From contig JAAILG010002464.1 of NCBI GenBank assembly GCA_012026655.1, forward strand, positions 1 through 54,363: a DNA stretch of 54,363 bases, given 5' to 3'. The notes below the pieces were generated by a model. The model had not been told where the DNA came from. It did not search any database and saw nothing but the letters and a program-made list of their open reading frames with translations. The translations under genes and the position numbers were made by a program. Source of the DNA: Hydrolagus affinis (Eukaryota). Shown one piece after another: positions 43,501 through 47,808 of the stretch. Positions within the stretch are counted from its first letter, which is position 1. Each line of letters opens with the position of its first letter.

Positions 43501-46500
43501 GCGTTAAAATCTCCAGGGAACCCAAATTATTATTGTCTTTCTCTTTACTGACGATTATGAAGACAGGGGTGTTCAAGAAACTGATTGATCATTATATTCT
43601 GATTTGACAAAGTTTACCCTTTAGTCACCACTGGGTGACTTTAAAACACCCAAATTGACAGAGTAGGATAGTTCTGGTTTAATTCTGAAATTGTTTGTTT
43701 GCCAAAAGAAATATTCCGCTGATATCCTACACACTAGAAATTTGGGTATTGTACACCTTTGATAGCCTGTTACAGTATTGGTCAGCAGTTTGATCAAACT
43801 GGAATCCATTGACAAAAATGCTTACTTTTGTGTAAATTATTCCAAAAATAAATTAGATTAAACTTTTGAGTTTGGTTCATGACTTTGATGAAGGGTTATA
43901 TTCGGTTTGTTAGTGTTCTAGATTGGATATTGACGTTGAAATTGATTGATTTCTGTATTGAGGCATACGTTTATCTGAATAACTATATTTGCTAAGCAGC
44001 AACTCGAGTTGTACAGCAAGTACAGGTGGGGGAATGTAGGAAGATGGAGAATACAGTGTTTCAGTCACAAATCAAATATTTCGTAAAAGTTTGCCAATTT
44101 ATTTGAAAATCTTGTGGTTGTCTAATTTAGATTTTACATTATGGAGTTGGCTACGATGTTGAGCAGAGCAACAATTAGTATTTTTTTTAATAATAGTAAT
44201 CATTGGTTACAGCACAGAAATAGGCCATTGGTCCCATCATATTTTCCACTTGCATTTTTCTCCACACAGACTATCTAATTTAATCCCACTCTCTTGCTTG
44301 CTCCCCATACATTTTACTTTTCCTCTATTTCAAGCATTTGTAAAAATTCCTCTTTTTTTAAACTCTTGTCTGCTTTAAAAATGTTGGTGGTTAAAAATTA
44401 AAAGCCACAGAAATTCACAAATTGAAGCATTTGTTAAATTAATAGATTGTTGCTTTGAAATTTTAACTGATTCCATGAATATCGGGCCCTGGGTAACTGG
44501 CCATGAGTGGAGGGGAGGTGAAACACTTGTCCAGTTTGCAGCTTCCAAAGAAATTTGGAATTTGTGTTTTAGTTTCATTCACTCAGTATTTGTGCTTTGA
44601 TGTTCACTCTAAATAAATGTTTAATTATTGTGTGTATATATAAATAATATACTGTATGAGTTCTCTTTAAATGTATAATTCCCAACATATTTGTTAAAGT
44701 ACTTGAAAGCTACAGAGTTAGTTTACTTTCTGAAGCCCTAACTTCAATTTACAAGAGTCAATGTAGTCTCTTACCTGAATAATGTGAATGAATTACAAAC
44801 ATATTTTACTTTGGAAAGGTTGTTAGTTGCTAACGACTAGATCTTCCTATAATAGCAGTTTTACACATAAGTGAACTCTGCTGTGATAGAACTGAACAAA
44901 TTTGATTAACACAAGATATCCTATAATTATGTGAGGTTTTGTTTTGGGGTATAGGTTAGTAGAAAAGATTTTCTATCAATCACATTAAAATTCATGTCTT
45001 CTGTCTGCTTCACCCATGCATTTCTTCTGTAGTTTCTTCCTGTACCACAACCCCATTAACAAAAAGCGTAAGAATTCTCTTCTTTCTTTACTCACTTGTG
45101 CTTTCGGACTGTTTTCATTGAGGGTCCCAACTGAACCTGAGAGAAACGGGAGATTTGAGGGCTCAAGGTGAGAATAAATGTTTAATAAATGTACTTTGGT
45201 CGAACTGATTGTTTGTCTGCATTCAGCAAGATTATAACCCCAATACGGACCCGTTAGTTCCAGTTGGGAAATGTGTTTACATATGTATTTTCACAGGACA
45301 GTGCAAACTCACTGACATCCGAGTCTAGTGTTTGAACATAGTGGGGTACTGGGTTGCTCAATGTGAAATATTTAAGGTGTAAATTCTGTATTTCATACAT
45401 TTTGGGATTAATGTACAAATAATTTATCTAATTGAATAATCTATGCTAATCGTGTTGATTGAAACAAAATAGTGCATTATAAATAGTTGGATAACAGATG
45501 CCTTTTTTTAATCTAACTTAATATTTTCAGGTTTGCAAATTGTGCTTTTTTTCCCTGAGGATGCAAATTGTATGTAGAAAAGGACTATTGTGATTACAAA
45601 TTAATTTGTTATAAATCAATCATCAAACTTATGAATAAGTGGTATAAAAGGGTCTGTTGAGTGAAGACTAAGGGGATTGGTTACAATAGGATTCTGTGTT
45701 CTATTTCTGAAACCTTGTTTAGCAGTCATGCAATGTTAGAATAAATCTTGTCCTGGCAGCCTCAAATCTTTCTCTCTACAGCTTTGCCAGTGTTTTCATT
45801 CCTTTTCTATCGATTCACTTGAGTAGTTAATGTATTGTACACTTGGAATATAATGTACACTCAAAGTAGATTTTGATCAAGCCGTTGCTGTCAAAAATAT
45901 ACACAGTGCGTTTCAATTGAGGATGTTTTAGACTTTAAGCGAACCCTGTCCTTGTTAATCTGGGACAGTGCAACTGAAAATTGGGGCACAGAATGGAGGG
46001 CCTGTGTGGTGCAGTGTGTAACACACTGTGCTTTTGTGTCTTGGACCTGGATTTGAATTCAACCCAAATTGATTGGATGAAAGTTTCCTCCACCTGCGGG
46101 CTTTAACCGTCCTTTAACAGCAACCGACTTTAGCATTACATACAGCTGGGAAGGAAATTGACAGAAGCATAAAGGGAGGAATACATTACCACAAATGACC
46201 AATGAATCAGTTGAAGCCTTTAAAAGTAAATCAGTTCAAACGCTTCACGATATAAAACGGGCAAACAGCAGGGATGTGGGATTGCAATAAATAACTGTAG
46301 AAGGGAAACTAGCACAGGTACAATAGGCCGAATGGTCACTTTCTGTACCAATTACGATTCACAATTTAGTTCACTCAGGAAATTGCCCAATTCAGTAATA
46401 ATTTTACTTGTTTACTTATTATCTGGTCCGAAAAGTAGGAAAGCACTACTAGTCCGCAGATTTGGGGAATGCTTTTTATCAAATACAAATTGCGGCAGAA

Positions 46501-47808: not shown

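Follow-up and report, generated by a model that had tools for sequence, protein, structure and literature searches.

Results

The locus encodes a MARK3 orthologue

The window analyzed here, a 54,363-nt contig of Hydrolagus affinis (JAAILG010002464.1), encodes a MARK3 orthologue on the + strand. Pfam searches matched the protein kinase domain (Pkinase, PF00069, E 9.6e-26) in the exon 27589–27840 and the KA1 domain (PF02149, E 3.2e-21) at residues 71–114 of the canonical-frame product of the last exon; a kinase domain and a C-terminal KA1, the combination that marks MARK/Par-1 kinases, are therefore both present in one gene. Identity in the spacer amounted to 86–90% with MARK3 proteins of bird, turtle, marsupial and frog, as compared to 68–72% with MARK4 and 47–63% with MARK1- or MARK2-like proteins, and the best matches in the protein database search were all named MARK3. 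Judged by these comparisons, the gene is a MARK3 orthologue and stands farther from MARK1, MARK2 and MARK4. The features relevant to its C-terminal part are collected in Table 1, where L denotes the canonical (long) frame and S the shifted (short-tail) frame.

Table 1. Features of the H. affinis MARK3 gene around the frame switch.
Feature	Position	Strand	Remarks
Spacer exon upstream of the switch	34505–34765	+	Ends ...TSKLTR; donor gtatgt
Optional 27-nt exon (NMSFRFAK)	36402–36428	+	Also in database MARK3 proteins, e.g. P0125, P0076
80-nt frame-switch exon, optional	41674–41753	+	Splice signals, RNA joint, MARK4 homology
45-nt exon, readable in two frames	45123–45167	+	Sequence, exon-wise translation
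Dual-coded start of the last exon	47463–47539	+	Translation; acceptor of the joint from 41753
S-frame stop TGA	47537–47539	+	Overlaps L-frame codons ATG AAA (M-K of TWSMK)
Last exon, L-frame coding part (114 codons + stop)	47463–47808	+	Holds KA1, absent from the predicted short isoform; L-frame stop at 47806–47808

The spacer exon upstream of the switch ends with AG, the first two bases of an Arg codon, so that the next exon gives one base. As the length of the optional 27-nt exon is a multiple of three, this exon leaves the frame unchanged. The 80-nt exon comprises 26 codons with one base (A) left over for the next codon; since 80 equals 2 mod 3, its inclusion moves the frame by one base.

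An 80-nt frame-switch exon is spliced into polyA RNA

The 80-nt exon has strong splice signals, as pyrimidines occupy 17 of the 20 positions directly before the acceptor AG and the donor reads gtaagt. When aligned to the piece that resembles exon 16 in MARK4 of lungfish, shark and bowfin, its product was identical in 19–20 of 27 columns, while a Pfam search of this product and of the short tail matched no family.

Transcript data consisted of three polyA runs (X3, X4, and X5), all from one sample of one study. In run X4, a joint 41753–47463 with GT..AG ends was supported by five reads that begin at five different positions, with no less than 50 nt on their shorter side; in X3 and X5 the same joint fell below the listing threshold, and it was thus recorded in one run of three. 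Depth over the bin of the 80-nt exon reached 4.22 (X4) and 3.26 (X5), with values of 0 to about 2.4 in the next four bins. These data show, with thin support, that polyA RNA contains the 80-nt exon in spliced form, in agreement with its place upstream of the dual-coding exons in the initial annotation. The same annotation had placed the 45-nt exon next in the transcript, an order that the reads did not reproduce: the observed joint leaves out the 45-nt exon yet stays in the shifted frame. No joint to or from the 45-nt exon reached 3 reads in the three runs, in which coverage is low and the bin of this exon lies at intron depth. Since the sole joint seen leads from the 80-nt exon to the last exon, we infer, rather than observe, that the 45-nt exon is used in both frames in this species.

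Two frames are open over 122 nt

Exon-wise translation confirmed that the 45-nt exon and the start of the last exon (45 + 77 = 122 nt) can be read in two frames, with a TGA at 47537–47539, as had been noticed in the initial reading of the sequence. The 45-nt exon (acceptor ...cattgag, donor gtgaga) gives 14 residues in each frame, and in the S frame its split codons add R before and V after. In the last exon, the S frame yields 24 residues from 47463 before the stop, and the L frame continues past the dual-coded part into the KA1 domain. Both frames are open and the S frame is used in mRNA via the 41753–47463 joint. Use of the L frame in mRNA is suggested by the KA1 homology and by a last-exon depth (10.6–40.8) far above the S-junction count. 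An open shifted frame was rejected as evidence in itself; the chance probability of 39 codons free of stops is ~0.15, and in the last exon the third frame, too, stays open for 44 codons.

The short tail recurs in database proteins

As queries we used single exons or database proteins, rather than joined models. In 64 database proteins we found an exon-16-like piece and, behind it, the 45-nt exon in its S-frame reading. A clean short tail terminates 34 of the database proteins, and all 34 finish in G-M, G-V or G-I. The same exon and tail are present in MARK4 of bamboo shark (P0018), sterlet, bowfin, eels, many teleosts and lungfish, and MARK3-type proteins of carp and Characodon hold an exon of the 80-nt type. 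The conserved tail pattern, RSQ.NLRE..DLR.Q followed by VA.YLGI and basic residues, is present in the S frame of the H. affinis gene, where the stop precedes KA1; the first 8 last-exon residues of the tail match MARK4 short forms at 6–7 positions. The distal tail differs among species in length and sequence. Among the best 120 of 3406 MARK3-type matches, tetrapod proteins all, the short tail or exon-16-like motif was found in none (0/120). The bamboo-shark fragment P0018 (region 77–148), used as a query under the length rule, returned 5 short fragments only.

The proximal part of the shifted frame exceeds chance similarity to MARK4

Initially judged by eye, the resemblance between the shifted frame and MARK4 was quantified against non-human MARK4 proteins and found to be greater than that of the canonical frame. 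In the 45-nt exon, 10–12 of 14 S-frame residues are identical to MARK4 short forms vs. 6 of 14 L-frame residues identical to MARK4 long tails. Over the initial codons of the last exon, the values were 6–7/9 (2.3–3.6 expected) in the S frame vs. 3–5/10 (2.6–3.6 expected) in the L frame. Expectations came from surrogate nulls built on protein data under uniform synonymous codon use, which stand in for dN/dS or PhyloCSF. When synonymous codons were drawn at random for the MARK4 L peptide, the mean S-frame identity expected in the 45-nt exon was 2.87 (~2.9) of 14, and the probability of 10 or more was ~1e-5. Because of these values, the S-frame likeness to MARK4 short tails is, under this null, beyond chance and cannot be a by-product of canonical-frame conservation. 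Conversely, the L-frame identity of 6/14 is not above the 3.5–4.1 expected from the S peptide alone (P 0.07–0.17).

When the L frame was compared with MARK3 orthologues, 10–12 of 14 residues were identical in the 45-nt exon (tetrapod MARK3) and 20–23 of 25 at the start of the last exon, which shows evident L-frame constraint among the orthologues aligned. Taken together, the codon-randomisation surrogates support the S frame being under constraint in its proximal part, and they give a hint that the constraint rests on the proximal tail rather than on the canonical frame.

The canonical protein forces the stop, and the distal tail varies

Examination of the distal end gave a different result. 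Canonical TWSMK fixes the TGA and the final P-G and leaves free a single base of the last codon, the second one; among tetrapod MARK3 proteins, the L sequence forces the S-frame stop in every case (116/116). As they are dictated by TWSMK, the stop and P-G are weak evidence for selection, and the conserved stop with terminal PGV was rejected as a sign of it. The suggestion made at the outset that selection acts on the alternative frame is therefore supported for the proximal tail, which exceeds the null, and gains little from the forced stop and P-G or from the distal tail, which is free to vary. The terminal Val had also been put forward as a PDZ-type ligand. We rejected this candidate: the S-tail ends recorded (PGV, AGM, GGM, DGM, AGI, PGI, AGV, PGM) fit no single class of PDZ ligand as these classes are canonically defined.

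The core of the tail, Y-L-G-I, was also followed in tetrapods. The L sequence of 86 of the 116 MARK3 proteins is unable to encode its G and that of 64 of the 116 its I, and bird and anole variants even permit a stop at S codon 5. By these counts most amniote MARK3 proteins are incapable of encoding the core motif of the tail, which hints that amniote MARK3 has drifted away from it.

Discussion

Proposed function of the switch

We consider it likely that the H. affinis locus represents the MARK3 counterpart of the MARK4S/MARK4L switch, with a proximal tail held by selection on the second frame. This reading builds on the exon anatomy, the open frames, the RNA splice joint, the MARK4 homology and a conservation of the second frame in excess of expectation. 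Joined to either the spacer exon or the 27-nt exon, the 80-nt exon would move the frame by one base, and the second frame would then be read through the 45-nt exon (if included) and over the initial 75 bases of the last exon up to its TGA. The short product would retain the kinase, UBA and spacer parts, and its C-terminal ~114 residues, including KA1, would be swapped for a short tail of net charge +6 that counts 24 residues, or 40 with the 45-nt exon. As the stop lies in the last exon, the short-form mRNA should escape nonsense-mediated decay; the initial annotation had expected this, and it follows from the established exon-junction rule. The short form is presumably translated.

MARK kinases control microtubule-associated proteins such as tau, and KA1 tethers these kinases to acidic membranes and restrains the kinase. 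The short form would be expected to lose KA1-dependent membrane binding and autoinhibition, and the predicted tail may have a role of its own. By removing KA1 and supplying a short basic tail, a conserved switch could plausibly alter where the kinase acts and how strongly.

As for its history, the proximal tail, i.e. the S-frame 45-nt exon and the following A-M/I-Y-L-G-I-K/R-K/R, would have been kept by S-frame selection since before the MARK3/MARK4 split, while the distal tail and stop would mostly follow from canonical-frame constraint. We advance more tentatively, and with some doubt, the bolder version in which this lineage still makes an ancestral KA1-less short MARK3, whose proximal tail (S-frame 45-nt exon plus AMYLGIKK) has been selected since before the MARK3/MARK4 duplication, the MARK3 tail having decayed in most amniotes and the MARK4 tail having been kept. 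If true, the tail would be a functional module (for targeting or regulation) with lineage-specific loss, and the "alternative" frame would be the better-conserved one in the proximal tail.

The switch might instead matter only for making a KA1-less kinase, or less full-length kinase. The tail itself would then be functionless and its likeness to MARK4S would be due to ancestry, together with the constraint that the canonical frame and the splicing signals of small alternative exons exert on the same bases. Such an explanation accommodates the stop and end residues set by L-frame TWSMK, the variable distal tail and a core motif that is beyond most amniote MARK3 proteins. It is also in line with the fish MARK4 proteins P0255/P0252 and P0261/P0257, which share the same L peptide and have S tails that, by eye, differ at L-silent positions. 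We nevertheless find it improbable, as the proximal S frame is far better preserved between the paralogues than the L frame, whose identity does not exceed what S conservation alone would give, whereas pure base-level conservation for splicing would preserve both frames equally. Moreover, where the last exon starts, the L replacements R/C, N/H and G/W could, as read back from the proteins, each be single changes at an L-first (S-third) position that are silent in the S frame.

In another reading, the 80-nt exon would be included in this species as a relic or as splicing noise, no MARK3 short protein would be made and the open frame would be left over from the ancestral MARK gene. This would agree with just 5 junction reads in a single run, with S-type MARK3 in none of those best 120 tetrapod matches, with the lack of a named MARK3 short isoform in the literature searched and with the fact that open frames of this length are not rare; we hold it very unlikely in view of the strong splice signals, the differing read starts and canonical ends, the preservation of the exon in carp and Characodon MARK3-type proteins, the inclusion of MARK3 among preserved dual-coding regions in a recent catalogue (bioRxiv 10.64898/2026.05.28.727796), and an identity of exon and S frame to paralogues that diverged early in the history of vertebrates, an identity which drift would have erased.

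Comparison with known systems

In MARK4, as described in PMC9355243, the short isoform MARK4S retains exon 16, and MARK4L is made without it, which moves the stop. The H. affinis gene has an optional exon of the same kind, with a length of 2 mod 3 and located in the same place, after the exon ending in ...KLTSKLTRR. The two exons are homologous (V..DPSK.Q..NKSV...PQGSKTV, from the lungfish, shark and bowfin comparison above), and both genes share the same shifted reading of the 45-nt exon and last-exon start, with a stop before KA1. At the same time, the H. affinis gene is a MARK3 orthologue, its exon has 26 codons vs. 27 in fish and shark MARK4, its tail carries four extra residues (TKSR) after KK and its reads skip the 45-nt exon. 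Some fish MARK4 long forms have a further exon that brings the S-frame reading back to the KA1 frame.

The closest MARK3-type counterpart comes from carp (P0076; KTF88123.1, Cyprinus carpio), a gene model and thus an unverified protein. It shares the 27-nt exon, an exon-16-like exon and a direct S-frame junction (...KTL then IAMYLGI...), as well as a tail that starts with I-A-M-Y-L-G-I-S-K-K and ends in PGV. In turn, its exon is longer (36 codons) and the middle of its tail differs, with 15 of 28 columns identical.

When we searched the literature for short isoforms of MARK3 or MARK1 under a name of their own, nothing came up beyond phosphosite notations and a paper on 3′UTR polyadenylation of MARK3, which is unrelated. 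The idea of dual coding at this locus is not new: Tress et al. (bioRxiv 10.64898/2026.05.28.727796) list dual-coding regions of MARK1, MARK3 and MARK4 as preserved across chordates and older than the gene duplications. For MARK4 they report a dN/dS value under 1 in each frame, along with a brain-specific isoform. The main text of the preprint gives no exon coordinates for MARK3 and leaves it unnamed among the regions with dN/dS support. Their regions resemble the present one in belonging to the same gene family and in that alternative splicing reframes C-terminal exons; unlike ours, their test, one of frame preservation, starts from human-centred annotation and not from this genome. The MARK3 short-tail switch is genuine, ancient and, through this 2026 listing, already reported. 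While both MARK4 forms are known and tissue-biased, the entry in that catalogue was all that we found for a MARK3 short form in the literature searched. To this our analysis adds little that is new, namely a clear non-amniote example with read support, together with hints of proximal-tail constraint and of amniote drift.

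Gene identity and exon organization

Judged by its sequence, the gene in the window is the MARK3 orthologue of the MARK kinase family, because Pfam gives a protein-kinase match on one exon (+ strand) and a KA1 match on the last (PF02149, E 3.2e-21), the spacer exon is nearer to MARK3 of bird, turtle, marsupial and frog (86-90% identity) than to MARK4 (68-72%), and all named entries among the best 120 database relatives of the spacer region of a MARK3 protein bear the name MARK3. A 100-N assembly gap (22087-22186) lies within the kinase-coding part of the gene.

We re-read the sequence and translated it exon by exon, and the coordinates and translations in the initial annotation were all correct.

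Exons and stop codons of the 3′ part of the MARK3 gene
Feature	Positions	Strand	Remarks
Spacer exon	34505-34765	+	final two bases begin an Arg codon
Optional 27-nt exon	36402-36428	+	
80-nt exon	41674-41753	+	donor gtaagt; pyrimidines at 17/20 positions just upstream of the acceptor AG
45-nt exon	45123-45167	+	
Last exon	from 47463	+	canonical stop at 47806-47808
Shifted-frame stop (TGA)	47537-47539	+	ends a 24-residue reading of the last exon

A single leftover base at the end of the 80-nt exon causes the downstream exons to be read in a shifted frame. The 45-nt exon then encodes a 14-residue peptide different from the canonical one, with split codons (R and V) at its two junctions, and the last exon runs to the early TGA, where the canonical frame proceeds into KA1. 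An open frame of this length has a probability of about 0.15 by chance; the openness of the shifted frame is unremarkable alone, and its weight lies in comparison with relatives. The last exon is also open for 44 codons in the third frame (47463-47594), and alternative open frames are not rare here.

Relatives carrying the exon and the short tail

In MARK4, exon 16 is present in the short isoform MARK4S and missing in MARK4L, a difference that shifts the stop position and alters the tail (PMC9355243). Similarity searches were run with single exons or database proteins as queries, with no joined model. The spacer exon retrieved 118 representatives, and the exon-16 plus 45-nt region of a fish MARK4 (P0115) retrieved 63 proteins from teleosts, eels, bowfin, sterlet, paddlefish and lungfish. 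Among the 303 proteins retrieved, 64 have an exon-16-like piece directly before a shifted-frame 45-nt exon, for which there are only five variants, and 34 finish with a clean short tail. The 80-nt exon is identical to MARK4 of lungfish, shark and bowfin at 19-20 of 27 columns. A bamboo-shark fragment (P0018), whose spacer is nearest, weakly, to MARK4, contains the exon-16-like piece, the shifted 45-nt exon and a short tail whose last residues are PGI. An exon-16-like exon is also found in a Characodon MARK3 fragment (P0002) and in Danionella P0053, where a further exon restores the KA1 frame.

Fish MARK4 proteins have more than two tail architectures (P0257-P0262, P0279-P0283, P0302, P0303). 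In forms of about 800 residues exon 16 is retained and the 45-nt exon has its shifted reading, after which an additional exon restores the KA1 frame; P0302 and P0303 also retain exon 16 yet read the 45-nt exon canonically.

Constraint on the two frames

In the 45-nt exon, the window is identical to MARK4 short forms at 10-12 of 14 residues in the shifted frame and to turtle MARK4 (P0019) at 6 of 14 in the canonical frame. When the MARK4 canonical peptide was re-coded with random synonymous codons, the shifted-frame match to the window averaged 2.87/14 and reached 10 in one of 100,000 trials. Random re-coding of the MARK4 shifted peptide predicted 3.5-4.1 canonical matches, and the six observed are not clearly above this expectation (P 0.07-0.17). 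Over the opening codons of the last exon, the shifted frame gave 6-7 matches of 9 against 2.3-3.6 expected, and the canonical frame 3-5 of 10 against 2.6-3.6. Both nulls treat synonymous codons as equally likely and serve as a stand-in for dN/dS. As shifted-frame identity is far above the null and canonical identity is not clearly so, the proximal ~70 bases look conserved between MARK3 and MARK4 as the shifted frame.

Plain base-level conservation, for example of splicing signals, would preserve both frames equally; the better preservation of the shifted frame between the paralogues argues against it. Comparison of MARK3 orthologues shows canonical-frame identity at 10-12 of 14 residues (45-nt exon) and 20-23 of 25 (last exon). 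Together with the shifted-frame excess between paralogues, these values show apparent constraint on both frames, each in a different comparison. The finding is real, and the central proposal of the initial annotation, that selection acts on the alternative frame, is borne out in the proximal overlap; the distal tail and the stop mostly follow from constraint on the canonical frame.

Transcript evidence

Positions 41650-47600 were compared with one contig run (X1) and with three polyA single-cell RNA runs (X3, X4, X5), the latter all from one sample, with joints listed from three reads upward. X4 contained a GT..AG joint, 41753 to 47463 (5 reads, 5 distinct starts, shorter side at least 50 bases), which links the 80-nt exon directly to the last exon with an Ile junction codon, leaving out the 45-nt exon. 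Omission of 45 bases, a multiple of 3, leaves the shifted frame intact. The carp MARK3-like protein P0076, with the 27-nt exon and a longer exon-16-like exon, shows a direct junction of the same kind (into IAMYLGISKK...SPGV). At the three-read threshold the joint was absent from X3 and X5. Depth in X3, X4 and X5 was 0.59, 4.22 and 3.26 in the bin of the 80-nt exon and 16.6, 40.8 and 10.6 in that of the last exon, with 0 to about 2.4 in the four bins following the 80-nt exon. These depths and the X4 joint show that inclusion of the 80-nt exon is genuine, though minor; where detected it may amount to between a tenth and a third, a very rough figure given the thin coverage.

No joint into or out of the 45-nt exon was listed in the three RNA runs at the same threshold, its bin depth is at intron level, and the X4 joint bypasses it; its dual use in Hydrolagus affinis is therefore inferred.

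Shortly before the last exon, the last intron contains an interspersed repeat (47222-47420). Its depth is huge in all four runs (mean word depth ~210,000 in X1, 270-430 in the three RNA runs), and it shows many loose ends as well as an opposite-strand joint at 47381/47391. The X1 contig, which carries another organism label, differs from the window at two last-exon bases: 47493 (A>G), which is synonymous in the canonical frame and gives K>R in the shifted one, and 47553 (T>C), downstream of the shifted stop.

The distal tail

The shifted stop arises from M and then K of the canonical motif TWSMK, whose T-W also gives the P-G near the tail end; the stop is forced in all 116 tetrapod MARK3 proteins, whatever codons are used. 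Within the last tail codon, the canonical frame leaves a single base free, the second. This codon specifies a hydrophobic residue in the window and in 34 of 34 database tails, which is suggestive, yet related species are not independent. The tail middle varies in length and sequence among species, and in fish MARK4 pairs with an identical canonical peptide it differs by eye. Three points of the initial annotation are thus less secure than proposed: the use of the 45-nt exon here, the significance of the stop and terminal Val, and the PDZ-type targeting. All 34 database tails end in G-M, G-V or G-I.

Possible drift of the core motif in amniote MARK3

For the 116 tetrapod MARK3 proteins, we deduced the possible shifted residues from the canonical proteins alone. 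In the core motif Y-L-G-I, where the last exon begins, G is encodable in only 30 (Xenopus, other frogs and geckos) and not in 86, and I is not encodable in 64; bird and anole variants permit termination at shifted codon 5. At this position (P0119-P0237), frogs and geckos have canonical G-D, and mammals, birds and other reptiles A-E, S-E, V-D or A-D; this replacement entails loss of the G, often of the I, and allows the stop in birds and anole. Short-tail MARK3 was absent among the best 120 listed tetrapod proteins, which fits a non-encodable core. The canonical sequences suggest that the MARK3 tail has drifted in most amniotes. In their 45-nt exon, by contrast, 12-13 of 14 shifted residues are still encodable and a stop is impossible.

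Relation to known MARK isoforms

A literature search of limited coverage found no named MARK3 or MARK1 short isoforms. The phenomenon is already published for the MARK family, MARK3 included. A May 2026 preprint (bioRxiv 10.64898/2026.05.28.727796) reports dual-coding regions in MARK1, MARK3 and MARK4 that are preserved across chordates and were acquired before the duplications. For MARK4 it describes an isoform specific to brain and dN/dS <1 in each of the two frames; another preprint (PMC13160074) likewise describes MARK4 frame use as brain-specific. Coordinates for MARK3 are absent from the main text of the first preprint, and MARK3 is not listed there with the dN/dS-supported cases, although its supplements may include them.
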